The notes under the pieces are model-generated. The model searched no databases, was not told where the DNA came from, and saw only the letters and a program-made list of their open reading frames with translations. This document shows, piece after piece, positions 32,549-60,677 of a stretch of 64,000 bases of DNA; position 1 is the stretch's first letter; every line of letters starts with the position of its first letter. The stretch lies in contig OZ281496.1 in NCBI GenBank assembly GCA_965637545.1, positions 28,148,001 to 28,212,000 on the forward strand, written 5' to 3'. This stretch comes from Phallusia mammillata (taxonomy: Eukaryota). A program made the position numbers and the translations under genes.

Positions 32549-33925
32549 TTAAAACGGTCCGATGTTTACGTTGCTGTTGGTGACATTGAAAACATTTGAG
32601 CTGATTTCTCTTGCTATTTGACTCCAGTTGATGAAGAAACTGCCCTTAACTTTTTCCCGGAGTTCGGTTTCATTTCGTTCCTCATAAATCGTGTAGTCAA
32701 CAGGTTGGACATCATCTTCAATTGGTTCTTCACTTGACTTTACCAAAAACTGTCGCGAAAGAGCGTCGTCATCTCTCAAGTTTTCTTGACTGATGACTGC
32801 ATTTTCGGGACGAAAATCAACAGCGTAGTCGGACACAAAAACTAGTCTCAGATTGTATGTTGGGCTGTAAGAGAAAGTGTTCATCGATATACACAATGTT
32901 TCATTTGTGTGCAGTTGTCTGACTCGGTCAAATGAAGAACCGTCGCTTTCAGTTAAATACCAAATCACTTCAAACGCACGATTACTGACAACTTTTCTAA
33001 ATCCCAAGGATGTTATTTGCCAGCCCAATCTATCACCCGCTCTTTCTTCTTCTTCAATAGCAATAGCCCTGTCAGAAAAGTGGAGTGCTTTGTACACTAC
33101 TTTGCCATCTGTACCAAGGGTGGCATTGGATTCAAATTGCCATGGCGACTTGTCGTTTTGGCGAACAAAGATAGAAACTTTGACTGGTCGCTCTGCGTCG
33201 AGAGAAAAGTAGGCGCTTCGACCCTCAACCTGAAAGTGCTTTTCAAATATTGTGCCGCTTGGCTCGCAGCATAAAATAGGAGCAATGCAAAAGAATTCGG
33301 AACCGTTCCCCCCAAATCTTTTTATGCTAGGTTTAAGACTTACAATCACCTCAACTTCTTTCTGTGTGGGACAAGCTGGAAAATCGACTTTGTAATCACC
33401 AAGGCTGATGTTTGCTCCCTTAAAACCAATCCGTTGATTTACGAATTGTGGAGAATTAGGCAGGTTTGGTTTTGGGTTCGTAGGTTCCACAACATCATTG
33501 CTGATTAGTGGTTCAGTATGTTTTTCTTTGGTGAAAAGAAGTCTCATAGATTCCTGAAGACAATCACTAAACCAAATTCCTTTCAGAAGTTTACAACGTA
33601 CCACTTTGCTTAGCAAAGAGAAAAGTAGCAACAACCCAACAACCAACAACAACAGTTCCACCTCTGTATAAGCTACGTTCCAAGTATGATCCAAAGGCGG
33701 CGGTATGTCATCAGTTATAGGCGCTGCAGTTGACCTTTCGAATGGATGAAGATTTTCCAGCGCTTCATTGCTTTCTTGAATCTTGCTCAAAATATATTCT
33801 CTATTTACAGTTGATCTTTTGAATTTATGAAGATTTTCCAGTATCGCTTTACTGTTTTCACGAATCTGTTCTAAAGTATGTTTTCCATTTGCAGTTACTA
33901 TCATTATTGGCTGAATCGAAACCAT
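32549..33925 (-). CDS. Array paralogue A: ectodomain + TM + ZU5(HFS) + UPA-like + RHIM-like end, 458 aa
   Basis: Uninterrupted ORF; TM VELLLLVVGLLLLFSLL; ZU5 signature IAPILCCEPSGTIFEKHF; HFS at 33074-33082; terminal VFNVTNSNVNIG. An AG just upstream of the ATG allows an additional 5' exon. Confidence 0.85.
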   Translation of the reverse strand: MVSIQPIMIVTANGKHTLEQIRENSKAILENLHKFKRSTVNREYILSKIQESNEALENLHPFERSTAAPITDDIPPPLDHTWNVAYTEVELLLLVVGLLLLFSLLSKVVRCKLLKGIWFSDCLQESMRLLFTKEKHTEPLISNDVVEPTNPKPNLPNSPQFVNQRIGFKGANISLGDYKVDFPACPTQKEVEVIVSLKPSIKRFGGNGSEFFCIAPILCCEPSGTIFEKHFQVEGRSAYFSLDAERPVKVSIFVRQNDKSPWQFESNATLGTDGKVVYKALHFSDRAIAIEEEERAGDRLGWQITSLGFRKVVSNRAFEVIWYLTESDGSSFDRVRQLHTNETLCISMNTFSYSPTYNLRLVFVSDYAVDFRPENAVISQENLRDDDALSRQFLVKSSEEPIEDDVQPVDYTIYEERNETELREKVKGSFFINWSQIAREISSNVFNVTNSNVNIGPF

Positions 33926-34129
33926 TCTGGTCTGGAATCACAAACACCTGATCGTTTTTCAGACTATAACTTCACTTTATTTGTCGTTGCTTATTTCATC
34001 AACTAGATAAAGCTTCTATTTATTGCTTCAAAAATCAAACACTTTCACTTGCAGGAGGTCTAAACCGTATATGGCATTTGCAGACGAAACGGGTTATTAT
34101 TTTTCCAAGTAAGTCATAAAACCCAGGTG

Positions 34130-34215
34130 GATCCCCACTCGGTCAATTCTAAAGGTTGCCTGGTAACCCAAGGCATACACCCACAGATTGTTATCCTTCA
34201 GTGACTTAGAAAGGA
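34130..34215. promoter_or_regulatory. Conserved upstream element with RFX X-box, paralogue A
   Basis: GTTGCCTGGTAAC at 34155-34167, about 230 bp upstream of the ATG; homologous blocks at 37060-37145 and 45795-45890. Confidence 0.5.
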
Positions 34216-34251
34216 AAAGTTTCCTGTGTTTGCTGTTGCCAATAACTACAC

Positions 34252-34718
34252 CAGTGGTTCCCAACCTTTTTTGTTACATTCCACCCTTTGCCCATTTTCT
34301 TACTATTCATTCCTCCCCATAAGATGAAAAACAAATATAACATAAAAAATTTTAGCAATTTAAAATATCAGTTTATTTCACATTACTACTCAATGCGAAA
34401 TTTGCTCTCGCTTGCGCTCTGAAAGTAGTTGTAATGGCAGCACAGTTCTTTTTATACTACTCGTCTCTTTTAAATACTGGTAGTTGACTAAAACTTAGGC
34501 TACAACTAAAATCTACACAAACAATGATATGCAACAAAGAATCTAGTTTCATTACACATACTATTTACTAACTGTCGACTGTTCAGTTTTTAAGCAACTA
34601 AGCATCAGCCAGATTGCCAAAAACAAAAATGTTGAAACAATTGACTTTGTTATGACAATAATTAATTAAATAATTTAAGTGCCTGAAAGAGGAATTCCTC
34701 CCCGGTTGGGAACCACTG
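34252..34718. mobile_element. 467-bp hAT MITE between paralogues A and B
   Basis: TIRs CAGTGGTTCCCAACC / GGTTGGGAACCACTG; perfect TSD aactacac at 34244-34251 and 34719-34726. Confidence 0.92.
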
Positions 34719-34789
34719 AACTACACAAACGTTCTGGTGAATAACTTATGACGCCAACACCCTTTAATTCAATACCCTTTAATCCAATA

Positions 34790-35530
34790 CCCTTTAATTA
34801 GTGCATTTATGTAAGTACTTATCTAACTGCTACATTTGTCGCCTTAACATAATCATTTTGAACAGAACGTTGTATGTTTTCCCTCCTGTTTCTCAATAGT
34901 GGAACAGCGGACCTTGGCTATTAATCGTTTTGGGTATAATTTCCATCTAAACATTTGCAGAAAAGTTGTCAATCCTGGAGTTATGGTTTCAGTTTGTTTG
35001 TTTGTTTTCTTGATCATTTCGTTTATATGTGCATTTTCTTCAAATCCGTTTGCAGCGTTTTTGTCTGACATAAAACCATCGTGCTTTGGTATCTTTACAT
35101 TAAGAGTATAGATTTGTTTTAATATGTTATAGTTTACCCGTAATTTGTTGCCGTTTTGGCTATTGACACATTGTGCAAACCAAAGTAATACCCTTTGTTG
35201 TTTATCGCAGTAAAATAAAGCATAGGAACACTGTACAAGGATGTGTTTGTTTTGTGGTAAATCGGCTCTTACAAACGACCCAATTAAATGCTTTCGTGGT
35301 TCTTTGTGGAGAAAAAACCAATATTTCTTTTTTTAAAGCAAGGTCTTTTTCTTTCTAACTTTTGCCATGGCTCAACGCGCATGTAGAAAACATGTCTTCT
35401 GTCACTTTTATTCGACTTTTTACAGTCACAAATATGTACAAAAATCAACTTTAACAGCAATAAAATATACACAAAACTGTGCAACACAAATTTAGACAAA
35501 ACTCGATATTCATCTAAAGTGAAATAGCGC
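34790..35530. repeat. 3'-flank module of the ZU5 array, copy beside paralogue B
   Basis: Colinear with 31690-32420 and 40010-40730. Confidence 0.85.
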
Positions 35531-35678
35531 AAAAAGTTATTTCATAAAGGAACATTTTCTTTTAAATTCCCAAAAGAAACAAAAACAGTTGTTTAATGGT
35601 CAATATGCCCTAAAAACTACTCATTTGCCACTGTACACAAATTCAAGGCGAGGATATAATTAAACCAGGCACTTCCAC

Positions 35679-36839
35679 TTAAACCGCCCTGATGTTTATG
35701 TTGCTGTTGCTGACATTGAAAACATTTGAACTGATTTCTCTTGCTATTAGACTCCAGTTGATGTAGAAACTACCCGTTATTTTTTCTCGGCTTTCGGTTT
35801 CATTTCGTTCCTCATAAATCTTGTAGTCAATAGGTTGGACATCATCTTCAATTGCTTCTTCGCCTGACTTGACCAGAAACTGTCTCGAAAGAACGTCGTC
35901 ATCTCTCAAGTTTTGTTGACTGATAAGGGCATTATCAGGACGAAAAACAACATCGTGGGCGGGAAGAAAAACCAATCTCAGATTGCATCTTGTGCTGTAG
36001 GAGAAAGTGTTCATCGATATGCACAATGTTTCATTTGTGTGCAGTTGCCTGATTCGTTCGAATGAAGGACCGTTGCTTTCAGCTAAATACCATGTCACCT
36101 CAAGCGCGCGTTTGCCAACAGCTTTCCCGAATCCAAACGACGTTATTTGCCTGCCCAATCTATTACCCGCTCTTTCTTCTTCTTCAATAGCAATAGCCCT
36201 GTCAGAAAAGTGGTGTGCTTTGTACAGTACTTTGCCATCTGTACCAAGGGTGGTATTGGACTCCAATTGCCATGGCGATTTGTCGTTTTTGCGACCAAAG
36301 ATGGAGACTTTGACTGGTCGCTCTGCGTCGAGAGAAAAGTAGGCGCTTCTGCCCTCTACGTGAAAGTTCTTTTCAAAGCTTGTGCCGCTTGGCTCGCAGC
36401 ACAAGATAGGAGCAATGCAAAAGAATTCGGAACCGTCTACACAAAAATTTCGTATACTTGGCTTCAAACTGATGCCCGCCTCAATTTCTTTCTGTTTAGA
36501 ACAAGCAGGAAAATCGACTTTGTATTCACCAAGGCTGATGTTCGCTCTCTTCGAACCTATCAACTCATTTACGTGTAGGGAAGAATTAGGCGGATTAGGC
36601 TTTAAGTTCAAAAGTGCAGGCAAGGCATTTTCAACGTTATCTTTGCTGATGAGTCGTTCAGTTTTTTTCCCTCTTGTAAAGTATTTGAAATATTGTAGAA
36701 CACCAACAAGATAACAATCAAAAACAGAAGTCCAAAAAACAGACAGTACGTTGGACCTCAGCAGTAGACTCTGACGCTCTTTCCACGACGTTTTCCTTCT
36801 TATGCCACAGCCAAATTCTTCTGGGCATTTCAATTTCAA
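35679..36839 (-). CDS. Array paralogue B (close to A): ZU5(HFS) + UPA-like intact, 5' end unresolved; possibly a pseudogene
   Basis: 386-codon open frame strongly similar to A from FT.....TE.LIS onward; HFS at 36204-36212; no in-frame ATG ahead of the ZU5 region and a TGA two codons upstream of the ORF start; terminal motif NINIR instead of NVNIG. Confidence 0.6.
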   Translation of the reverse strand: MKLKCPEEFGCGIRRKTSWKERQSLLLRSNVLSVFWTSVFDCYLVGVLQYFKYFTRGKKTERLISKDNVENALPALLNLKPNPPNSSLHVNELIGSKRANISLGEYKVDFPACSKQKEIEAGISLKPSIRNFCVDGSEFFCIAPILCCEPSGTSFEKNFHVEGRSAYFSLDAERPVKVSIFGRKNDKSPWQLESNTTLGTDGKVLYKAHHFSDRAIAIEEEERAGNRLGRQITSFGFGKAVGKRALEVTWYLAESNGPSFERIRQLHTNETLCISMNTFSYSTRCNLRLVFLPAHDVVFRPDNALISQQNLRDDDVLSRQFLVKSGEEAIEDDVQPIDYKIYEERNETESREKITGSFYINWSLIAREISSNVFNVSNSNINIRAV

Positions 36840-37967
36840 TTTTCAAGTATTTTCTTGTATACGCCCATGACACCCGTCGCTACATTCTGGCTAGTCGCTG
36901 CAAGTAAAGATGTTCAGAGAAAGTATCCATATCTAACGAAGTGTTCATCGCCGTCTAAAGTTCAGACAGAATATTTAAACAGTGCGTCGTTTCTGAACCC
37001 GTCGATAAAATTCGCAAATGGCAACAGGTGTGTTTCTTTCTCTAGCTATAACCCCTTGTTAATCCCCCCACGGTCATTTTTGATGGTTGCTTAGTAACAG
37101 CAAACTCCCACCCACACATCGTTTTCCCTCAATGACTTAGAAAAGCAAAGGTAAAAGCGCCAGACGTCATTGCTCATGGAAGAATGAAGGTAAAAGCTTC
37201 AGACTCCTTTGTTTGTCATTGCTACTGCGGCTTAAATTCCTGCTAAATATAACGTCAGTATTTGAAATGTGTCGACTGGTACAGATTTATGATTTCTGCC
37301 GAATTTTTTTATTTCTCTTCTACCGTGCACAATTACCTATCAGTATTTATCTTTATGAATTTTTTTCATGGCTTAACGCGCATGTAGAAAACATTGTATT
37401 TTGTTACTTTTATTCGACTTTTTAAAATTACAAATACGTACAAAAAATCAACTTTAAAAGCAATAAAATATACACAAAACTGTACACCTAAAGTGAAAAT
37501 AACAAATTTTTTCATTAGGGAGCATTAAATTTTTCTTCACAAAGACCACACATAAAAAAAACTTCGTCTAAAGGCTCTAAAAATTCTTTCCATTCACTTG
37601 TTTACATATATGCACATTCGAAACTGCGTCAATTTGTCGTAGTTAAATGTAACGTCTCGGGGCGACACTAAAGGCACCAAGCGTGTGTATTCACTGCTGC
37701 CTTTAAACAGTGGAAACTTTCCGCCAAATGCATCATTGGAAAATGTCCCGTTAAGGGCTGTATGTTGTGTTTTGGTCCCATATTTTGTCAATTGTTTTAA
37801 CTTGTGACATTGATATACAGTAACGAATCCTGATTTTTAAAAAAATGCCCAGAAAGTTTGCACATAGAAGCATTAAAGACGCGGAAAAGATTGTCACATT
37901 TGTGCATTGTCATATTCTTGGTTTTCACAACCAGGTTCTTCTTCTCCAGTCGTTTCGTTCCCGTGCA

Positions 37968-39442
37968 TCAACACATGTCTCTCACATGCAGGTGATTGAC
38001 GTTACCAGTAATTGTAAGGCTTGGTTCTGGCTCGCGTGCGGCCCATGAAATGTAGAATCGACCGTCAACCATCGACTCATTTCCTTCAGACAACATTTGA
38101 TCAATTTTGTAAGTGATAGTTGAAAGTTGGCGTTCGGGATTTTCTAATTCAATAAGAAAGTTTGTGGGAAGGGACTGAAGGAGACGTAGACGGTTTGATG
38201 GGATTCCAACTTCATTTCGATCTAATTTTGTTTCTTCTCCTTGAAGTTTTAAAACAAGATTTTGATCAAGTCGAATCCTTATCGTCTCATAGGATATTGC
38301 TTTATTTAAATTCTCACATTGCCCTCGAATTCGATTGTAAGTTGCCTCGTCCATTCGATCAATGAGAAACCAAGTAAGATCTCGTGCATGCTGACCGAGT
38401 CGCCGTGTGTAACCAAAAGTAGCCATTTCTCTGCACACATTAGCTGCGTTCGAAACGTTGACAATAACTTCGCGATCAGAAAAATGATCAGCCTTGAAAA
38501 CAACATTCCCTTTGTTGTCTAGTGATGACGTCGATTCCACTTGCCAAGACGATTTCTCGTCATTTCTGACGTAAACCTTCACAGGGACTGATTGAGATTC
38601 GTTCAACGCGAAGAAGCTGCTTTGTAATGTAACTGTAAAAGGTTTGAGGAACTGTATACCGGATGGTTCGCATCTAAGCCAGGGAGCAATTCGGAAGTCG
38701 TTTTTGCTCTGGACACTGTCGTATCGACCGACTGAGAATTTGAGAAACCTTTTGTGACTTACTGCTCCTTCAGGAAAGCAAAGTTTGTAGCATCCGACTT
38801 GAGCCGTCCCACCGTCGAATCCCAAGCACAATGTGTGTTTGCCTTCATGACTTGTGGAACCAAAGAGTTTTTGCTGATTTAAAATTTTTAGGACTAATAG
38901 TTTCTTCCGAGTTTTTGCACTGTCGTCCAATCGCAATGAGATAGAACTAGTGTTAGATGATTCTATGCGAAGAGCGAAAATGAGATATGCTATAACCAAA
39001 TGGATTACAACCAACAGAATTATCAGAACTAAAGTGATAATTGAGGTCAAACTCCAAAAAGGAATAAGCTCCTTATCTGATCCGCTGGTGGCAGTGGCGG
39101 CGATGGTGGTGGTTGGTTTGGGGGTGATTGCAGTGGTAGGGGTGGTGTTGGGAGTGTCGTACAATGTAGTTGAATTTATCTAAACACATACCGTCAGTAA
39201 GTTTTTCAATCAAACAATCTGTCACTTTTACATCATAAAAATTTCAAAAATTTCAAAATCTTGTTTTTGCGATGTTACAAATATTACCAGGTTTATTATG
39301 TTTTAGAAAACAGTAAAAAGATTACAGATCTGGACAATGTGTAGCCAGCAGCTTACTTACATTTATTCTACCTTGCAAAAACGAGTCAACAAAATCTTAC
39401 CGTAGTGCCCTCGAAAGTTCTCGTTGTAAACGCAAAGTCCAT
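37968..39442 (-). CDS. Array paralogue C: Thr/Pro-rich ectodomain + TM + ZU5(HFS) + UPA-like; C-terminal tail frameshifted
   Basis: Main exon 39179-37968 with acceptor gtgtttag; upstream exon 39442-39401 (MDFAFTTRTFEGTT, donor gtaaga, phase 0), which may extend further 5'. HFS at 38478-38486. Ends HLHVRDMC* because of a 2-nt insertion relative to paralogues D and G. Confidence 0.8.
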
Positions 39443-40009
39443 AATGTCAGGGGATTGTACAGAGACTGGTAAAGGCAATCCACAAACGTACAGTGTACTG
39501 GAACGAAATTTATCCTCATTGGTTTTAAAACTTCAAAGACCAAATAAAAACAAAACTTTATGATAGGCTTTATGTTTTGAAACTTAGCACAAAAAATAAC
39601 TCCACTAAAGTGTTACGGCTAGGCTGACATTAATGTATCCTACAATCATCATTTTAATCGTATAGGACATTACCTATCTGGTGCAATTCAAAACCTTCCT
39701 TCGCTTTTGTTTTGTTTTGAAATAACAGTGTATTATTGTCTAAATTATTAATGATGCAACTTGTGTTAGGTCGCTAAAGCGTAAAACAGTTTCTCATAAC
39801 TGTTCAAAAACCTACATTAAATAACTTTAGAAATTGTTTAAACCTGTTTCACTACTTGACCTCAAAAAAAGTTCTCTTGTGTTGTGCTACGAAAACAAAG
39901 TTTTGGGCAGCGACTGTCGTCCCTAAACGAATACCCTGGGAATAACCTGGCAAACTTTTTTGAGAGTAACAGTCGGCGCCATGGTTAATAGAAAAAGGTA
40001 TATATTAGC

Positions 40010-40730
40010 CGGCATTTATTTGATTACTTATCTGGCTCCCACATTTATTTGCGGAACATAATCGTTTTAAACATACCGTTGTATGTTTTTTTTAACTCTT
40101 TTGTATCCCATCAGAAACAACAGACCTTGACTAGTAATCTTTTTGGTTAAAATTTCTATTTCTATCCAATCATTTGTGGAAAAGTTGTCAATGCTGGAGT
40201 TAAGGTTTCAACGTGTTTTTTATTATTTCGTTTATACGTGTATTTTCTTCAAAACCGTTCACAGCGTGTTGCTTGGCTGAAAACCATCGTGTTTTGGTAT
40301 CTCTACATTAAGAGTATGCGTATGTTTTAATATGATGTATTTCTCCCGTAACTTGTTGCCTTTCTGGCGATTGGCACATTGTGCAAAGCAAAGTAATACC
40401 CTTTGTTGTTTATCGCAGTAAAATAAAGCATAGGAACACTACACAAAGATTGGCTTTGTAGTGAATCAGTTCTTACAAACGACACAACGAAATTAAATGC
40501 TTTTGTGGTTCTCTGTGGAGAACAAACCAATCTTTTTTTCAAACCTAAGTTTCTTTCTAACTTTTTGCCATGGGTCAACGCGCATGTAGAAAACATGTCT
40601 TTTGCTACTTTTATTCGACTTTTTTTACAATCACTAATACGCACAAAAACCAACTTTAATAGCACTAAAATATACACAAAACTGTACAACACAAATTCAA
40701 ACAAAATGCGCAATCACCTATAAAGTAAAA
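40010..40730. repeat. 3'-flank module of the ZU5 array, copy beside paralogue D
   Basis: Very similar to 31690-32420 over about 700 bp by eye. Confidence 0.85.
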
Positions 40731-41110
40731 AATATCACCCAATTTTTTTGTTTATTTTCACATGAGTCATACCATGAAATCAAATGTTGTCTAAAGGCTC
40801 TACAAATTCTTTCCATTTACATATTTACACAAAATTCGAAATTGTGTCAATTTGTCGTGGTTGAATGTAACGTCTCGGGGCGACCCTAAAGGCACCAGGC
40901 GTATTTGTTCATTGCTGCCTTTAAATATAGTGCCAAATTTCCGCCAAATGTATCATTGGAAAATGTCCCGTTAAGGGCTGTGTGGTGTTTTGGTCCTATA
41001 TTTTGTCAATTGTTTAAACTTGCAACGTTGATATACAATAACGAATCCTGATTAAAAAAAACTGCTCAGAAAGTTTCCACATAGAAGCATTAAAGACGCG
41101 AAAAAGATTG

Positions 41111-42660
41111 TCACATTTGTGCATTGTCATATCCTTGGAACCAGGTTGTTTCTGAACCAGGTTGTTCTTCTCCAGTCGCTTCGTTCACATGCACCAACAC
41201 ATCTCCAACATGCAAGTGATTGACGTTACCAGTGATTGTACGGTTTGGTTCTGGCTCGCGTGCGGCCCATGAGATGTAGAATCGACCGTCAACCATCGAC
41301 TCATTTCCTTCAGGTAGTCTTTGATCAATTTCGTAAGTAAAAGTTGAAAGTTGGCGTTCAGAATTTTCTAATTCGAGCAAAAATTTTGTGGGAAGGGACT
41401 GAAGGAGACGTAGACGGTTTGAAGAAATTTCAATCTCATTTCGATCTAATTTTGTTTCTTCTCCTTGAAGTTTTAAAACAAGATTTTGATCAAGTCGAAT
41501 CCTCAATGTCTCATAAGGGATTGCCTCGTCTGAATTCTCATTTTGCTCGCGAATTCGATTGTAGGTTGCCTCATCCATTCGATCAATAAGAAACCAGGTG
41601 AGATCTCGTGCATGTTGACCGAATGACCGCGTAAAACCAAACGTAGCCATTTCTCTGCCCACTATAGGTGCGTTTGAAACGTCAAAAACCTCTTCGCGAT
41701 CAGAAAAATGATCAGCCTTAAAAACTACATTCCCTTTGTTGTCTAGTGATGACGTCGATTCCAGTTGCCAAGGTGATTTCTCGTCATTTCTGACGTAAAC
41801 CTTTACAGGGACCGATTGAGATTCATTCAACGCAAAGAAACTGCTTTGCAGTGTAACTGTGAATGGTTTGAGGAACTTTATACCGGATGGTTCGCATCTA
41901 AGCCAGGGAGCAATTCGGAAGTCGTTTTTGCTCTGGTCGCTGTCGTATGGACCGACTGAGAATTTGAGAGAGGTTTTTGTGACTTACTGCTCCTTCAGGA
42001 AAGCATAGTTTGTAGCAGCCGACTTGAACCGTCCCACCGTCTAAGCCCAAACAGAGTGTCTGTTTGCCTTCGTGACTTGTTGTCACGTCGCCATGTGATA
42101 CTTCTATAAGTACGTTGTGATTTTATGCGCAAAACTGAATGGGAACGACTTAAAAACAAGACGATTACTAGAATTGAGAGACATAAAGCGATAAAGATCG
42201 AAGTCAAGATTGTAACAAGCTCATTATCTGGTTCGTAGGGGGCGACGTCGTTGGTGGTTGGATTGGAGGTGAGAGTGAATGTTGGGCTGGGGTTCGAGTT
42301 AATGCTGGTGGTAGGGGTGATGTTGAGGGTGTTGTACACTGTAGTTGAATTTATCTAAACATATACCTTTCGTAAGTTTCTAATATCACACAACCGTTCA
42401 ATTTTTACATTTTAAAAACATCAACTTGTTGTTATATTTTTGGTTTTCTCATCCTGTCCACGAACGGGAGTTTCGTAGGCTGAATATAACAGCCAGCGTT
42501 TTGCCATTCGCTACACTCATGAAACTCTAAAGACCGAGACAATGTGCAGCTAGCAGCTATAATTAGGCCTACATTTGTTCTAACCTGCAAAAACATTTTA
42601 ACAAAATCTTATCGTAGTTGCCTCGAAGGTTTTGTGGCTTGTTAATACAATTACATTCAT
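41111..42660 (-). pseudogene. Array paralogue D: full-length but disrupted
   Basis: Three ORF pieces in different frames (41995-42339 with TM, 41898-42086, 41111-41830). One frameshift lies just after the TM, a +1 lies in the A-run near 41975, and the donor of exon 42660-42613 is changed from GT to AT. HFS at 41702-41710 and NHLHVG retained. Confidence 0.85.
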
Positions 42661-43993
42661 AATGCCAAAGGATTGTATAGAGACTGGTAACGGTAATCCA
42701 CAAGCCTACGGTGTATACTAAAAAAGAAATCTATCTTGTTTTATCATCAAACTTTAAAGACCAACACTGTAAAATAAAATAAAACATAACTTTACATGAG
42801 GCTTTGTATTACATCTTAGTATGAAAAAATAACTCCAGTAATGTGTAACGGCTATAGGCTGGCTTGGATGTATCTTACAATCATCATTCAGTCGTATGGG
42901 ACATTTCCTATCTGGTGCAATTGAGAACCTTTCCTTCGCTTTTGTTTTGTTATGAAACAACATTGTATTAATAATAATACCACTTTTCTTGGGTCGCTAA
43001 AGCGAAGAAAAACATTTAATAACTTTAGAAATTGTTTAAACCGGTTTCACTATTAAACCTTAACGAAATTTGCTTGAAGACAAAGTTATGGGCAGCGACT
43101 GTCGTCCCTCAACGAATAACCTGCGAATTTCACAACAAAATTGTTTTGGAAATTACAGTAGGCGCCATTGTTACGTCGTTTTTGTCAACTGTTGTGAACA
43201 TAACTTTGTCCAGCAACACGTATAACAATTGTCCTGTGACGCAACAGTTGGTGTTTCATTCACTGTAAATCGGGATCCCACCCAGGGGGTGCAGACTGTT
43301 AACGTTTCTGTCAACTTTGTTTTATTAAAAAATGATTCTCTAAAACTTTTTTTGTTCACCCACTGTATTGCGCACGTACTAACCACAAACGTGGGACAAT
43401 AACCCGACAATTGTGTCCGAGTGTTTTCTTTATCACTAGTTTGACTCTCCCAAAAACTTTGGCAAGTTGAATGTTAACTATAAAAAAACCACAACAACAA
43501 GCACTGTGCGACAACTTGGCTGTGTTTATAGTAGGCCATCCAGTAATTGAACAGTGTCAGTGTTGATTTAAAAAAATCCGGACCCCAAAATCCATTGTTG
43601 CGAACAATGAAATGAAATTAAATGCTTTTGTGGTTCTCTCTGGAGAACAAACCAAACTTTTTTTCAAAGCAAAGTCTTTCTCTTTCTGACTTAGTTGCCA
43701 AGGCTCAACGCGCATGCAGAAAACATGTCTTTTGTTACTTTTATTAGTTTTAACAGTCACTAATACGCATAAAAATCAACTTTAAAAGCACTAAAATATA
43801 CACAAAACTGTACAACACAAATTCAAACAAAACGCGCAATCACCTAAAGTAAAAATATCACTCAAATTTTTATTAAGGAGCATTTAGCTTTCCTTCACAA
43901 AAAATAGTGAGTGAAAGTAACGTCCCGAGCGACCCTAAATGCCTCAGGCGCCATTGTTCACTGCTTTCAAATAGCGCCTCAGGCGCCATTGTT

Positions 43994-44777
43994 AATACCG
44001 GATGGTTCGCATCTAAGCCAGGGAGCAATTCGGAAGTCGTTTTTGCTTTTGTCGCTGTCGTATGGACCGACTGAGAATTTGAGAGAGGTTTTGTGACTTA
44101 CTGCTCCTTCAGGAAAGCATAGTTTGTAGCAGCCGACTTGAACCGTCCCACCGTCTAAGCCCAAACAGAGTGTCTGTCTGCCTTCGTGACTTGTTGTCAC
44201 GTCGCCATGTGATACTTCTATAAGTACGTTGTGATTTTATGCGCAAAACTGAATGGGAACGACTTAAAAACAAGACGATTACTAGAATTGAGAGACATAA
44301 AGCGATAAAGATCGAAGTCAAGATTGTAACAAGCTCATTATCTGGTTCGTAGGGGGCGACATCGTTGGTGGTTGGATTGGAGGTGAGAGTGAATGTTGGG
44401 CTGGGGTTCGAGTTAATGCTGGTGGTAGGGGTGATGTTGAGGGTGTTGTACACTGTAGTTGAATTTATCTGAACATATACCTTTCGTAAGTTTCTAATAT
44501 CACACAACCTTTCAATTTTTACATTTTAAAAACATCAACTTGTTGTTATATTTTTAGTTTTCTCATCCTGTCCACGAACGGGAGTTTCGTAGGCTGAATA
44601 TAACAGCCAGCGTTTTGCCATTCGCTACACTTATGAAACTCTAATTTAGACCGAGACAATGTGCAGCTAGCAGCTATAATTAGGCCTACATTTGTTCTAA
44701 CCTGCAAAAACGTTTTAACAAAATCTTACCGTAGTTGCCTCGAAGGTTTTGTGGCTTGTTAATACAATTACATTCAT
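43994..44777 (-). pseudogene. Array paralogue F: recent duplicate of D truncated inside ZU5; may still encode a 135-aa TM peptide
   Basis: 43995-45290 is near-identical to 41880-43150. Exon 44777-44730 with intact gtaaga donor plus exon 44468-44109 give ectodomain + TM + short tail. ZU5 homology stops at CEPSGI (about 43995). Confidence 0.85.
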
Positions 44778-46791
44778 AATGCCAAAGGATTGTATAGAGA
44801 CTGGTAACGGTAATCCACAAGCCTACGGTGTATACTAAAAAAGAAATCTATCTTGTTTTATCAAAACTTTAAAGACCAACACTGTAAAATAAAAAAAAAC
44901 ATAACTTTACCTAAGGCTTTGTATTACATCTTAGTATGAAAAATAACTCCAGTAATGTGTAACGGCTATAGGCTGACTTGGATGTATCTTACAATCATCA
45001 TAGTCGTATGGGACATTTCCTATCTGGTGCAATTGAGAACCTTTCCTTCGCTTTTGTTTTGTTTTGAAACAACATTTTATAAATAATAATACCACTTTTC
45101 TTGGGTCGCTAAAACGTAGAAAAACATTCAATAACTTTAGAAATTGTTTAAACCGGTTTCACTATAAAACCTCAACGAAATTTGCTTTACTTTGTGCTAC
45201 GAAAACCAAGTTATGGGCAGCGACTGTCGCCCCTCAACGAATACCCTGGGAATTTCACAAAAAACTTTTTTGGAAGTTACAGTCGGCGCCATGGTAAAAA
45301 AAAAAATTCAGTCGCCCATACCCTCCAAACCTAACCAATTAAGGTTTTATAGCGCGCCTAAACAAACGTAATAAAGCGCTGAAAAACGTTGCCCGCTTTT
45401 TCAGCCGAATCAATTGTTACAAACGACACAATACATTTAACTGCCTTTGTGGTTCTTCAGGTGTACAAGAACATGTTTCAGCGTTGTCGTTTTTTTAAAG
45501 TACTTTGTTTGTCACTTTTTATTTCATCAGCACGATAAAGCTTTTAACTTATAGCTTTTGGTTTGTCATAATTGAGTTCACTCGCATTAACAGCATAAGG
45601 TCCAGTTGAAAACATCCATATAGCAACGGGTATTTTAGGTTCGGCCTGACCGACCGAGATTTTTTGGCCTCATGGCCGAATATTTGGTTTCAGCCCGAAC
45701 CATTTTAGGCGGGTTCTGTGCATCACTAGTTTAAACCGTATATGACATTTGCACACGAAACAGCTTATTTGTTTCCAAGTACGTTATTAAACGGTAAATC
45801 CCCACACGGTCAATTCTAAACGTTGCCTGGCAACCTCAAGACAGACGCCCACACATGTTATCCCTAATTCAGTGACATTGCAACGAAAAATTTAACTGTA
45901 AACCAATCTGTGTTTGCCGTTCCCAATATCTCACGCTACAACGCGATGGAAAAAGCCGAACATTGCTGGCAATTTTTTAGATTAAAATTTTATATCTGCA
46001 AAACAATATTTTAAGACACCGCTTAAATGAATGAATGAAATACGTTTTGTACTTGCTGGTCTATTTACGTCTTTTTGTATTTACGATATTTACACATGAA
46101 CTACTAACGTACATAGACTGATATTAATCCACTCTGTGTTTGTTAAGTTAGGGTTTGTACCCTAGCTGATTCCGTCCTTTACGCATTGTTCCTCAGCCGA
46201 ACCCCAATTCATAAGAATTGGTGCTTTATTCAGATTTTTTATGAACAGTTTCTGGACCAAATCAAACCAAATCCGGTTTTACACAAAAATTAAACTCGTC
46301 AGTTAAAAGATTTGTTTCTTAAAGCACAATATAGGCCATACCCTAGTAAAATTGCTTACCTGTGCTAAAACAACGGTACTGAACACGCTATATACGCAGT
46401 TTCGTTGTAGTTGACCTTTAGTAGAAATTCTATAGTTTCAACACGTAATGGTACTTCCCTTATTTTTCTGCTGTGGTTGTAGGGTGGGTTGTTTTCAGTG
46501 AAGCAAATCACCGTAGCATTTGTCTACTGGAGTGAATGCCATTTCAAGAATGATGATGTGTATAACGAACCGGTTAAGAAGTGGGAAAAGTTAGGCTTTG
46601 TTGTAGCAGTGATGATATACGAACCGCTATTTTAACGAATACTCTTTTAAATCTTTATTAGATTAAAAGCAAAGTTTTATAGTGTTTTTATTTTTAAAAT
46701 AGATGCTTAAGATTTTTTGAGAAAGTCACATTTTTAAAAATTACTATGTTACTGCAGAACATTAAACAATATTTACAATTAGTATTCCCTG

Positions 46792-48135
46792 GTGTATCAC
46801 TGTACTGCTAATTCAACGCCATTTGAGATGGAGGACAAACAATTCGCCGACATGTTTAAGAGAACGAAAGCATCTTTGCCAGCTTCGACTACAGTTTCGG
46901 TTGTTCAGTCCGAAGGCGCTTCTTATGACGAAGGCCACTTTGTTTATCCAATAGCAATAGTTGCATTGGCCTGTATTGCCATAATTGTTGCATCGTTTGC
47001 ATTGTGGATATTTCGGATCAAACCGTCCAAACCTTTACCGAACTTATTTTCACCACGTTCGAGTTCGTACTACGGGGCAAAGTGTTATGGCTCAATGGTA
47101 TCGGAACGGGCAAGGGCCCTGAAATTTAGCCCTTTTAAGTCCAAATCGCCACAAAACTTCGAAAACAATAAACGCTCTACTGACAGAGTGACAGACCGAT
47201 GGTCTCGGAAACTCGATATCTCCTTAAACAGGAATGGAAGCGATTTTACACTCGGATGCTATTGTTTGTCATTTCCAAAAGGCTCAGTTGACAAAGATGT
47301 AGATTTGAGTTTTTCCGTCGAATCCTTTAACGATGACACAGAACACAAAAAGGAAATACGGATCGCTCCGCGTCTTAGATGCGAACCATGCGGCATAAAG
47401 TTCACCAAACCATTTACAGTTATACTGCAGAGTAGTTTCTTTGCGTTAAACAAATCTCAATCAGTCTCTGTAAAGGTTTACGTCAGAAATGACAAAAAAT
47501 CGCCTTGGCAACTTGAATCGACGTCATCACTAGACAACAAAGGGAAGGTAGTTTTCAAGGCTGATCATTTTTCTGATCGCGAAGTTATTGTCAGCGTTTC
47601 CAACGCACCTATTGTGGGCAGAGAAATGGCCACGTTTGGTTTTACGCGGTCATTCGGTCAACATGCACGTGATCTCACCTGGTTTCTCATTGATCGAAAC
47701 GACGAGGCAACCTACAATCGAATTCGCGGGCAATATGAGAATTCAGATGAAGCAATACCCTATGAGACAATGAGGATTAGGCTTGATCAAAATCTCGTTT
47801 TAAAACTTCAAGGAGAAGAAACAAAATTAGACCGAAATGAAGTTGAAATCTCATCAAACCGTCTACGTCTTCTTCAGGCCTTTCCCACAAAATTTCTGCT
47901 TCAATTAGAAAATTCTGAACGCCAACTTTCAACTGTCACTTACGAAATTGATCAAATGTTGTCTGAAGGAAATGAGTCGATGGTTGACGGTCGATTCTAC
48001 ATTTCTTGGACAACACCAGAACCTCCGGAACCAAACCTTACCATTACTGGTAACGTCAATCACTTGCACGTGGGAGATGTGTTGAGGCATGTGAACGAAA
48101 CGACTGAAGAAGGACCTGGTTCGGAGGAAAATTGA
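46792..48135 (+). CDS. Array paralogue G (inverted orientation): ectodomain + TM + ZU5(HFS) + UPA-like + RHIM-like, about 435-447 aa
   Basis: Uninterrupted ORF; first ATG at 46828, in-frame acceptor at 46781-46782 suggests an upstream exon; TM FVYPIAIVALACIAIIVASFALWIF; HFS at 47566-47574; LTITGNVNHLHVG at 48037-48075. Confidence 0.85.
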   Translation: MYHCTANSTPFEMEDKQFADMFKRTKASLPASTTVSVVQSEGASYDEGHFVYPIAIVALACIAIIVASFALWIFRIKPSKPLPNLFSPRSSSYYGAKCYGSMVSERARALKFSPFKSKSPQNFENNKRSTDRVTDRWSRKLDISLNRNGSDFTLGCYCLSFPKGSVDKDVDLSFSVESFNDDTEHKKEIRIAPRLRCEPCGIKFTKPFTVILQSSFFALNKSQSVSVKVYVRNDKKSPWQLESTSSLDNKGKVVFKADHFSDREVIVSVSNAPIVGREMATFGFTRSFGQHARDLTWFLIDRNDEATYNRIRGQYENSDEAIPYETMRIRLDQNLVLKLQGEETKLDRNEVEISSNRLRLLQAFPTKFLLQLENSERQLSTVTYEIDQMLSEGNESMVDGRFYISWTTPEPPEPNLTITGNVNHLHVGDVLRHVNETTEEGPGSEEN

Positions 48136-48725
48136 CCTTAAAAAGGGGAATACACAATTATGATAATATTGTGTTGTGTCGTTTGTACCAGTAAAAGCAC
48201 CGTCCATGTCAGTCGGGACTATCGATAACATACATATGTATATTTAGCCACGCATCCATAACGCGGAGTATAAGAAGTTATTTGGTATTCTATAGCCAAA
48301 CCAAAAGGCAAGTCAAAATTCAGTTATTGGGAATAGTCTTTGGAAATCGGCTTTTGGCTAACAGTTAATTGCTTATCGAGCAGGAATATAAAGCCATATG
48401 TGCTTATACTGAACTCTTATTTGTCAACATAATAATAATTGATTTCGAATTAAATGCTATGAGTGTCAAGAAACTAGACCGTTTGATTTGTCGACCGAAT
48501 CTCGCAGTTTGTTTCGCTTTTTGTCGCAAACTGCAGTCCCGTCGGTGATTACCCGGGGGATTCACCCAAAAGTTTTTTCCAGACATTTTTGTGTAGGCGT
48601 AAGGTTAATACATAGAACTTTGAATAAACGAAAAGAATAGGCTATGCCTTCTGATAACATTCCCATGATACCATTAAATGCTACAAAACACTGCAAAAGA
48701 AGTATTATAATACAAAATCATTACA

Positions 48726-48948
48726 ATGTAAAAACATATAGAGCCAATAAATGATAAGCTGCAGACAGTGCACACTGTTTCGACCTATAAGGTCTCATCA
48801 GTGCAGCTGGTGACGAGAGATCGGCCGCCTTGGCTAGTGTAGCCATTCAACGGCACTCCAGTTTGTTGGGAGCACAGGGTACAACCCCATGCATCACCTA
48901 GTCTGTGCGATGCCACAACTCGAAACAGTGTGCACTGTCTGCAGCTTA
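48726..48948 (-). mobile_element. 223-bp Penelope-like/retrozyme-type insertion with inverted terminal segment
   Basis: 14-bp direct repeat acaaaatcattaca at 48712-48725 and 48949-48962; perfect 29-bp inverted repeat at 48755-48783 and 48920-48948; contains a hammerhead ribozyme. Confidence 0.7.
48756..48808 (-). ncRNA. Type I hammerhead ribozyme
   Basis: Minus strand reads AGCTGCA-CTGATGA-GACC(TTATA)GGTC-GAA-ACAGT(GTGC)ACTGT-C-TGCAGCT: complete core, stems I, II and III all pair, GUC cleavage triplet. Confidence 0.9.
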
Positions 48949-49368
48949 ACAAAATCATTACATTTGGGAATATATCAACTATTTAATTTGCTAGAAGATA
49001 AACACAATGTTACCCTCGTTTTAGCATAATTTGTAGCACTTATCCTTAATATTTTGTGACGTTTTAAAGTTATAATAGGCATGTAAAAGACTCCATAAAA
49101 AACGAGAACAACAGACATTTTAGTCCGGCTAACAAAGTTTCGTCGCAAACCTTATTTAGCCGTTCGCTTCACCTCACTCAGTAAACACAAAAGCCTTGAT
49201 GGCGCAATATCGTCACGGGCCGATACGCAAACACTCCTTCGTATAACTTTTCAGCACACCTTGAGACGGGCGGTCGAAGTACAGCAGAGTCACAATCGTT
49301 AAAGAAACGTTCCTAATAAAGTAAAACAGTGCAGTTTTATGTTGTGTTTGAGGTAATCTTAAGCAAAG

Positions 49369-50889
49369 ATGGAACACAATCTTTCAGTTTTGGAAAGGTG
49401 TAAAAATTGCACTGCTAATGAAACCAATATAACTGCTGTTGTGCCGAATGGAAAGAATGATGTCAATTTTCCTTGGCTTCCTGTTGTTTATGTAGTCCCA
49501 GTGGTTACTATTATCGCATTTCTGTATCTCTTGCTACGGCGGTATTATACTAAGTTGCGTCGGGCTGTTCAGCAGCCTCTCGCCTTGACAGTTCAACCTT
49601 GCTATCAGTCAAACGCTAAAGAATCTTGCCTTAAAGCTCCAACTGCTTTGCAGAAGGTTCAAGAGCAAGGCGTCAAAGTGATTTTATCAGATATTTCAGA
49701 AACAAGAAATACTCTAAAACCGGTTTCGACCTCAACAGAAAACGCTAAAATCTTGAGTATAACTCTGGGGCCTAAAGGTGAAACTGTACGAAAGGGTTGT
49801 TACACTCTAATATTTCCTCCTGGTGCATTGGACAAAAATACTGATGTTGAAATCTCAGTCTTGGAAAATGAGGACAGCACTATATCAGGGCATTTCAGAA
49901 TCGCCCCTGTGTTACGATGCGAACCTAGCGGATTATCGTTCAAAAAACCGTTTCAAGTTGTTGTTGAAAGCAGGTTTTTCGCCTGGACCTCAGACAAACT
50001 TGTTGCAGCTAAAGTTTCGGTGCGGGAAAACGCATTTTTGCCTTGGGAAGACGAGTCAACTACTTTGCTAGGTCATGACGGAAAGGCTGCGTTTTCGGCT
50101 ACGCATTTTTCAGGTCGATCTATCGACTGCAACCTAGAGGACCGGAGTGATGTAGGAAGGGATATGTGCACTTTTGGATATTTGTCTGTTTTGGATCATC
50201 AAGCCACGGAGCTTACTTGGTACGTTTTAGACAAACAAAGTAATGATGACTATGAACGTATCTGTAAGCGTCACATCAAGGACAGTGATGCAGTTTCATA
50301 CCAAGTTATGAAGGTTAACTTAGATTACAGGCTGAAATTAACGTTGACCTCAAACAGCAGTGTAAATTTGGAGCCAAAAGTGGAATTTATTGAAAGCTGG
50401 GATCTTTGCAGTCTAAACACAAGATCAAAGAAATTTTTGCTAGAACTGGGTGATGAATATGTTAAAAGGTCAACAGTGAAATACAATGTTAAACACCAAA
50501 CAATAAGAATGGACATGCTTGAGTACGGCGACACGGGCAATACGATTGCGCAAGGCCGATTCTTTGTTCAGTGGGGTTTGGCTCGTAGCGAATCTCAAAC
50601 TAGCCTTCAATTCGTCGGAGGAACACAAAATCTAAGTCTGGGGAACAACGGCACAACTAGTTTCAGTTCGTTTTCGGAAAGCTCCCAAAACTCACAAAGC
50701 AATTTAAGTTTACCATTGGCCGAGCAGTCAGTGCAAAACGAGGACATTCGTGGTTTACCAGCTGCGCGGGCTCAACTTCCTTCCACACCAAACGACAGTC
50801 GCGCATCGACCTTAAACAGGCCTGCGATCCAATCTCCAATGGCCTTTAACCAATCAGCAAACGATTTGGTGTTTTTTAAGGTTGTTTGA
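49369..50889 (+). CDS. Array paralogue H (most divergent): N-glycosylated ectodomain + TM + ZU5(HFS) + UPA-like + RHIM-like + Ser/Gln/Pro tail, 506 aa
   Basis: ATG-to-stop ORF; sequons NLS, NCT, NET, NIT before TM WLPVVYVVPVVTIIAFLYLLL; ZU5 LGPKG...LIFPPGAL...IAPVLRCEPSGLSFKKPF; THFS at 50101-50112; LQFVGGTQNLSLGNN at 50605-50649. Confidence 0.88.
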   Translation: MEHNLSVLERCKNCTANETNITAVVPNGKNDVNFPWLPVVYVVPVVTIIAFLYLLLRRYYTKLRRAVQQPLALTVQPCYQSNAKESCLKAPTALQKVQEQGVKVILSDISETRNTLKPVSTSTENAKILSITLGPKGETVRKGCYTLIFPPGALDKNTDVEISVLENEDSTISGHFRIAPVLRCEPSGLSFKKPFQVVVESRFFAWTSDKLVAAKVSVRENAFLPWEDESTTLLGHDGKAAFSATHFSGRSIDCNLEDRSDVGRDMCTFGYLSVLDHQATELTWYVLDKQSNDDYERICKRHIKDSDAVSYQVMKVNLDYRLKLTLTSNSSVNLEPKVEFIESWDLCSLNTRSKKFLLELGDEYVKRSTVKYNVKHQTIRMDMLEYGDTGNTIAQGRFFVQWGLARSESQTSLQFVGGTQNLSLGNNGTTSFSSFSESSQNSQSNLSLPLAEQSVQNEDIRGLPAARAQLPSTPNDSRASTLNRPAIQSPMAFNQSANDLVFFKVV

Positions 50890-51337
50890 CATGCCAATAG
50901 CCTAAACTGCGTGGCCTCTGCTTTATCGGTTGTGAAAAGTATTTTGTATGTGCTTACTTTTCGATCATTGAGCTCTAATTTATTTTCTTTTTGGTGCTAC
51001 AGTAGCTAACTCGTTATGTCGGTTGCATTCTTTTCGATTTAAAATGGTACCAAACATCATATTTTTTTGTATCTTCGATGAGTTAACACACTCAATCCGG
51101 TAATTTTTACTGCTTTGTCTGTAAATACAAGTTTTGTACATTTTTGCATGTGTTGTACTATTATTCTGATTAAAAACAGTTATTTCCGATAAAAAATGAA
51201 GTTCTTAGAAAAAAAAGAGAAAAAAATATTTTTGGATTTCTTAGTCGAGGATTAAATGTAGGGTCCTTTTTTTCTTTCTTTTCTCTCCCTGGAAGAAAAA
51301 TTCGGCGGTGTTCGTTTGCAACTCAGTTTGAAAATCA

Positions 51338-60677
<9,340 letters not shown>

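Follow-up and report, generated by a model that had tools for sequence, protein, structure and literature searches.

A window of 64,000 nucleotides from Phallusia mammillata (assembly GCA_965637545.1, contig OZ281496.1, positions 28,148,001 to 28,212,000 of the forward strand) was analysed, and here we describe a tandem array of seven paralogous gene copies, A, B, C, D, F, G and H, that occupies window positions 32549-50889. Their shared features are a single transmembrane (TM) segment, a ZU5 domain signature (IAPxLxCEPSG..F.K.F), the tripeptide His-Phe-Ser, a conserved region of about 155 residues after it, and a tail bearing a short motif rich in Asn, Gly and beta-branched residues. We regard these proteins as an uncharacterised variant of UNC5CL- and FIIND-type modules that has no death domain. 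The copies, in window coordinates, are as follows.

Copy A, 32549-33925, minus strand: intact open reading frame (ORF) of 458 amino acids with an ATG start; TM segment 33599-33655; His-Phe-Ser 33074-33082; tail motif NVFNVTNSNVNIGPF at 32552-32596, which is the C-terminus of the protein.
Copy B, 35679-36839, minus strand: ZU5-UPA ORF without an in-frame ATG and with a degenerate TM segment, probably a pseudogene; His-Phe-Ser 36204-36212; tail motif 35682-35726, Arg replacing Gly.
Copy C, 37968-39442, minus strand: exon 1 39401-39442 (14 codons from the ATG), GT..AG intron 39180-39400 (minus strand), exon 2 37968-39179; TM segment 38976-39032; His-Phe-Ser 38478-38486.
Copy D, 41111 to about 42400, minus strand: pseudogene whose reading frame is shifted twice; His-Phe-Ser 41702-41710; tail motif 41201-41242.
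Copy F, about 43991-44507, minus strand: N-terminal fragment with the ectodomain, the TM segment and the start of ZU5.
Copy G, 46792-48135, plus strand: intact ORF whose in-frame Met comes 13 codons in; TM segment 46957-47013; His-Phe-Ser 47566-47574; tail motif NLTITGNVNHLHVGD at 48034-48078.
Copy H, 49369-50889, plus strand: intact ORF of 506 amino acids with an ATG start; TM segment 49477-49533; ZU5-UPA core 49741-50583; His-Phe-Ser 50104-50112; tail motif 50602-50652; further tail motifs DIRGLPAAR 50743-50769 and, at the end, NDLVFFKVV 50860-50886.

The ORF list and three-frame translations place the seven paralogues where a preliminary description of this DNA had put them, and bear out the features it had listed as common to the copies, from the TM segment, ZU5 signature and His-Phe-Ser to the conserved region and the tail motif. 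Its seven-member array stands in number and not in integrity: all seven are present, and A, G and H alone are fully intact, with open frames of 447-506 codons in which TM segment, His-Phe-Ser and tail are all preserved. One further gene, C, has a damaged tail, and three copies (B, D and F) are broken. The frame of C is open, but its tail motif has Gly changed to Arg, and a 2-nucleotide deletion brings an early stop and a shorter tail. In D, the frame is lost at a deletion of about 65 nucleotides near 42080, common to D and F, and again at a 1-nucleotide insertion at 41978 found in D only. Copy F is 97% identical to D, and the homology stops directly after CEPSGI. The coding sequence lies almost entirely in a single exon, as had been described, to which we can add a short first exon located for C, D and F; the layout of this exon and a GT..AG intron seen in C is alike in D and F. 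Copies D and F belong to a duplicated segment of some 2.9 kb; the flanks upstream of the two copies (about 42400-43200 and 44560-45300) are repeated too, and the flank sequence recurs upstream of C at about 39700-40000. The point where F ceases to resemble D is a junction with unrelated, internally repeated sequence.

The membrane anchor and the ZU5-UPA supramodule, both named in the preliminary description, are upheld by our analysis. A, C, G and H have TM segments with a 19-residue mean Kyte-Doolittle hydropathy of 2.5-3.3; the value for B is 1.5. Four N-glycosylation sequons of H precede the helix and basic residues come after it, from which we predict that the N-terminus is outside and the C-terminus inside, with no signal peptide. 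The short ectodomain diverges fast and is often rich in Thr and Pro. An AlphaFold2 model of H, for which 42 relatives were aligned, contains a confident TM helix (residues 37-68), a core rich in beta structure that spans 125-405 with a predicted local distance difference test score (pLDDT) above 90, and a disordered tail from 411 to the end (pLDDT below about 50). When superposed with VIA-align, this model matched the UNC5b cytoplasmic domain with a Z of 17.1, residues 125-402 lying on 541-828 of the chain, which we take to be its ZU5 and UPA domains. The ankyrin-B chain spanning ZU5-ZU5-UPA and the death domain gave the same Z of 17.1, CARD8 gave 13.9 and the NLRP1 FIIND 13.7. Foldseek agrees with these matches, its top Swiss-Prot hit being human UNC5CL (E 3e-15, query 70-411 on residues 20-394 of 518), and in a protein-language search the nearest Atlas clusters were UNC5 and UNC5CL. 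At the sequence level, the Pfam ZU5 model (PF00791) scored 24.1 bits on H, over the curated cut-off of 21, and 18.6 on G and 15.6 on C, both under it; it matched 22 of 42 related sequences. A profile of the family matched ankyrin ZU5 chains at an E of 5e-13, and the best sequence matches were the ZU5 domains of ankyrin and ZO-1. A PDB search with a single sequence returned no match. The Pfam UPA, UPA_2 and UPA-FIIND models (PF17217, PF17809, PF23679) matched no window copy at E up to 1 and none of 42 relatives at E 0.01, so that the UPA assignment comes from the fold. Taking the Pfam ZU5 match in H, the ankyrin profile matches and the superpositions together, H has, by its model, the two-domain ZU5-UPA fold.

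The His-Phe-Ser tripeptide is invariant in all six copies that reach the region (A, B, C, D, G and H). Both the sequence and the H model put it at the ZU5/UPA junction, as had been claimed: it lies where ZU5 ends and the strand running into UPA begins. Among 42 tunicate ZU5-UPA sequences, HF is followed in most by Ser, Cys or Thr, with a few exceptions, and such an exchange at the third position is the pattern that would be expected of an attacking nucleophile. The cleavage site is HF/S in PIDD and SF/S in both CARD8 and NLRP1; the reaction requires the Ser, and its products remain associated (PMC3210808). In UNC5b, the residue matching the Phe of the CARD8 SF/S site is Leu-677 (PMC3210808). 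From the His-Phe-Ser pattern and the precedent of PIDD, CARD8 and NLRP1 cleavage, we strongly infer that the array proteins would undergo autoproteolysis between Phe and Ser.

What follows the UPA region is a tail of 20-100 residues that is predicted to be disordered. The Pfam Death, CARD and TIR models matched no window copy, and the Death, CARD, TIR and RHIM models matched none of 42 relatives scanned to their C-termini. We considered a hidden death-domain exon and rejected it, since the ORFs downstream of the genes contain no such domain. The Pfam scans, the disordered tail and the downstream ORFs thus agree with the earlier statement that the death domain is missing. The next gene starts at about 51338, about 450 bp past H. 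An ORF at 51338-51622 on the plus strand, probably the first exon of that gene, encodes the start of an FAD/NAD(P)-binding Rossmann domain (Pfam FAD_oxidored, E 4e-5) and bounds the 3' side of H.

A profile search of 1.84 billion representatives retrieved 65 proteins, and a search of a 5.8-billion-protein set with the single sequence of H retrieved one relative only. The eight best relatives (P0001-P0008) are full-length and have the same layout as the array proteins.

P0001: another species, from a Logan assembly; full-length relative.
P0002-P0005: marine metagenome contigs, with one copy of the gene within 10 kb to either side; full-length relatives.
P0006-P0008: Clavelina lepadiformis; full-length relatives.
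P0025 and P0029: Styela clava; more distant members.

The full-length relatives come from tunicates or unlabelled marine contigs only and are all named "uncharacterized," and the family appears to be restricted to tunicates. In full-text literature searches, we came across no paper describing this kind of architecture and no named family; neither database naming nor the literature contradicts the preliminary description, which had recognised no named family in it. The other matches of the profile search share the ZU5-UPA part alone, with varied domains upstream.

P0012, P0014 and P0016 (Styela clava): NACHT, UBA-like and BTB-BACK-Kelch domains upstream of ZU5-UPA.
P0022 (Phallusia mammillata, labelled "RIPK1-like"): protein kinase upstream of ZU5-UPA.
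P0019 (unlabelled JGI contig): SH2 upstream of ZU5-UPA.

In all five of these proteins, the C-terminus is a short tail rich in Asn, Gly, Val and Ile, and neither a CARD nor a death domain is present. A model of the last 382 residues of P0012, the NACHT protein from Styela, showed a ZU5-UPA unit (Z 19.4 to UNC5b and 16.7 to the NLRP1 FIIND) and after it about 45 disordered residues without a CARD; as modelled, this protein looks like an NLRP1-type layout minus the CARD.

In a maximum-likelihood tree of the core, the copies form three subfamilies, namely (A,B), (C,D,G) and the pair of H and P0001, the last two being joined with a support of 93/93. The ratio of non-synonymous to synonymous substitution rates (dN/dS) between paralogues is 0.17-0.38 in ZU5 and UPA, which indicates past purifying selection on the core at the sequence level; in the N-terminal part, about half of the non-synonymous sites differ. 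These values fit birth-and-death evolution of genes that were once under selection, and the three broken copies and three subfamilies also fit the birth-and-death evolution put forward earlier.

About 10 residues past the UPA region, the tails bear the Asn/Gly/beta-branched motif in a form that is specific to each subfamily.

A/B subfamily: NVFNVTNSNVNIG
C/D/G subfamily: LTITGNVNHLHVGD
H: SLQFVGGTQNLSLGNNG
P0001: NVNINGSNCVNIGNEG
Metagenome group: S-I-x-x-G-D-x-V-x-H-Y

Inside each subfamily, the motif is a real element at a constant position and always in disorder; a common sequence across the subfamilies could not be demonstrated. A leave-out profile made without the window copies appeared to find the motif in six of six test proteins, but several of its training segments had been chosen by eye. 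In an unbiased repeat, a profile built from the position-defined tails of other species did not recognise the window motifs, and, out of sample, the motif profile had no power on 23 more distant relatives. We therefore reject the idea of one motif common to all subfamilies. The long-tailed members carry a second tail motif, [D/E]-hydrophobic-I-x-x-x-P-A-x-R, whose form DIRGLPAAR is identical in H and P0001 and whose general form also occurs in the Clavelina and metagenome relatives; a terminal ND-x-VFF is common to H and P0001. Copies A, B, C, D and G have neither the DIRGLPAAR-type motif nor the terminal ND-x-VFF, and the first motif is therefore the sole tail element kept by every copy.

Among known systems, UNC5CL (ZUD; UNC5C-like protein), the best Swiss-Prot fold match, also has an N-terminal membrane anchor, almost no ectodomain and a cytoplasmic ZU5-UPA, and shares the His-Phe-Ser cleavage motif. 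However, UNC5CL ends in a death domain, whereas the array proteins end 20-100 disordered residues past UPA, and sequence identity between the two is only about 15%. With the FIIND of NLRP1 and CARD8 (Z 13.7-13.9) and with PIDD1, the array proteins have in common the ZU5-UPA fold and an (H/S)-F-S motif at the domain junction. Those proteins, unlike ours, are cytosolic, with LRR or NACHT ahead of the module and a CARD or death domain behind it; in the array proteins, a TM anchor stands upstream and no folded domain downstream. The two-domain fold (Z 17.1) and a ZU5 recognisable by sequence are shared with UNC5A-D and the ankyrins as well, but the array proteins have no Ig/TSP ectodomain, ankyrin repeats or death domain. 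We know of no report of self-cleavage in UNC5b or the ankyrins.

Based on these findings, we lean, with slightly more confidence than doubt, towards a family of self-cleaving single-pass membrane ZU5-UPA proteins that signal via a released UPA-tail fragment with tail motifs. The protein would cut itself between Phe and Ser, as PIDD1, UNC5CL, NLRP1 and CARD8 do, and the ZU5 stub in the membrane would keep hold of the UPA-tail fragment non-covalently. Loss or degradation of the N-terminal part would then free this fragment, which may self-associate via UPA, and the short linear motif or motifs of the tail, in place of a death domain or CARD, would recruit the next component. Since H groups with P0001 and shares the second tail motif with the Clavelina and metagenome relatives, it may represent the ancestral long-tailed form; A/B and C/D/G would be lineage-specific duplicates with shortened tails, several of them decaying. 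By analogy only, innate immunity would be the most likely setting. Several points weigh against this scheme. We infer its steps of cleavage, release and signalling; the UPA assignment derives from the predicted fold, the Pfam UPA, UPA_2 and FIIND models being silent; and in UNC5b and the ankyrins the shared fold is not known to go with self-cleavage or immune action. Of the seven copies, three are broken, and the tail of a fourth is altered. In addition, sampled words of H and of A-C occurred in none of the 12 RNA-labelled runs of the species, which are of small size (16-34 million letters of contigs) and of unstated tissue of origin.

The preliminary description had read the tail as a RHIM-like, amyloid-type motif. 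In the corresponding alternative, which we consider unlikely, the tail would be a divergent RHIM-type amyloid, and UPA clustering would seed a cross-beta fibre that templates a partner motif, on the models of RIPK1/RIPK3, PGRP-LC/IMD and fungal NWD2/HET-s. The likeness of the tail to RHIM and cRHIM proteins (RIPK1, RIPK3, TRIF and ZBP1; PGRP-LC/LE and IMD in Drosophila) and to HET-s/NWD2 lies in an Asn/Gly/Val/Ile-rich motif in a disordered region, placed where related architectures, other ZU5-UPA proteins among them, have a death-fold domain. The motif, in which Thr is also frequent, alternates polar and hydrophobic residues, and its Gly is changed to Arg solely in the decaying copies B and C. 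In amphioxus, RHIMs sit at positions usually held by death-fold domains, and tunicates appear to lack RHIMs (Kajava et al., PMC4262963); a divergent motif at the death-fold position in tunicates could have been missed by the profiles of these authors. The core of a RHIM, however, is the tetrad (V/I)-Q-(V/I/L/C)-G within a segment of 18-20 residues (PMC13506858), and the canonical tetrad is missing from every window copy: A has VNIG, G LHVG and TITG, and H QFVG and LSLG, none with Gln at position 2. The Pfam RHIM model matched none of nine tails at E up to 10, and a profile of 18 tail segments searched against the PDB returned collagen adhesins and no RIPK or HET-s chains; nor did the two most RHIM-like Styela tails find a RIPK chain there. 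We also scored 19 tails against the human RIPK3 motif and a RIPK1 motif, both confirmed against PDB chains, with 1000 shuffles of each tail. The window copies did no better than shuffled tails (p 0.14 for A, 0.19 for G and 0.70 for H); three Styela tails fell below 0.05 (p 0.002, 0.009 and 0.038), and Fisher's combined p over the 19 tails, whose sequences are not independent, was 0.016. The Phallusia "RIPK1-like" kinase, used as a query for vertebrate RIPKs, found only generic kinases. In amyloid signalling pairs, such as NWD2/HET-s in fungi and BASS in bacteria, a partner gene, as a rule the neighbouring one, bears the same motif. Here, a partner motif was seen at a single locus. At that of P0001 (L001:149-205, minus strand), an open frame starts with NVNINVSHCVIVGNQNTAV, an in-register copy of the P0001 tail motif, 1.4 kb upstream of the P0001 gene and on the opposite strand, and this frame runs off the contig. 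The two copies have 10 of 19 residues identical and similar codons, and their score of 57 compares with a maximum of 33 in 200 shuffles; the pair recalls, by analogy, the matched motifs of fungal NLRs and effectors, at one locus only. In the window, there is no second copy of the motif (p 0.11-0.53), and the loci of four other relatives (L002, L003, L005 and L006) hold none either. Besides, the position-defined profile of other species failed on the window motifs, and in long-tailed members DIRGLPAAR is better conserved than the proposed RHIM. The window copies thus differ from RHIM and HET-s proteins in the tetrad, in profile match, in similarity beyond composition and in a partner motif within the window. 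The tests by sequence do not support a RHIM or amyloid identity of the tail, and the motif has no demonstrable kinship to RHIM; on this point the preliminary description was not borne out. We are equally doubtful of the broader proposal that tunicates swapped the death-fold output of ZU5-UPA/FIIND modules for short, fast-evolving amyloid-type motifs with matching partner genes, with membrane-anchored sensors (the array) and NACHT-, kinase-, SH2- and BTB-Kelch-linked ones as part of the same joint claim. If true, chordates would possess an equivalent of the amyloid signalling of fungi and bacteria, linked to self-cleavage in the manner of FIIND, a possibility tempered by the current sequence evidence.

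It is also conceivable, if distinctly improbable in our view, that the proteins are non-immune scaffolds whose ZU5-UPA binds a cytoskeletal or membrane partner uncleaved, as in ankyrins, ZO-1 and UNC5, with docking motifs in the tail. The top sequence matches to ankyrin and ZO-1 ZU5, a fold common to the non-cleaving UNC5b and ankyrin-B, and window copies that carry no immune domain in cis would agree with such a role. It is harder to reconcile with an invariant His-Phe-Ser and with Ser, Cys or Thr mostly occupying the Ser position across distant relatives; UNC5b has Leu-677 at the position of the CARD8 Phe (PMC3210808). In relatives, this module is joined to NACHT, kinase and SH2 domains, and the tandem expansion, rapidly diverging ectodomains and pseudogenes are typical of immune gene families, all of which argues against a scaffold. 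Lastly, the cluster could be decaying and silent, a remnant without present function in the species. No RNA run contains any copy, B, D and F are broken and the tail of C is damaged; against these stand the open frames of A, G and H with TM segment, His-Phe-Ser and tail intact, a dN/dS well below 1, and the small size and unstated tissue of the RNA runs, and we hold this account to be very unlikely.

Tunicates form the vertebrates' sister group, and ZU5-UPA is the self-cleaving switch of PIDD1, UNC5CL, NLRP1 and CARD8. To our knowledge, this switch passes its signal to a death-fold domain in every studied case. In the array, a membrane anchor precedes the putative switch and a bare tail follows it; should this tail serve as the output, it would provide a second route by which a ZU5-UPA switch is coupled to downstream partners. 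The array proteins would also offer a compact system in which to ask what UPA oligomerisation needs.

Some further observations concern RNA cover and repeats in the window. For two RNA runs compared with 45000-50999, the region of G and H, cover was confined to a very high-copy repeat at 48.7-48.95 kb. Two other candidates for evidence of transcription, runs X1 and X2, were rejected because their cover of genes and intergenic DNA is even, that is, DNA-like. Scans of the window for tRNAs and for Rfam families at gathering threshold were empty. Upstream of G, a repeated segment at 45400-45800 reaches a depth 10-60 times that of its flanks in DNA runs. The repeat between G and H (48725-48950) has a word depth of about 282,000 in a DNA run, compared with about 100 in its flanks, and occurs in RNA-run contigs too. 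At 48758-48807 on the minus strand, there is a match to the type I hammerhead of 22.8 bits, under its gathering score of 34 (E 0.006 over 701 bases).

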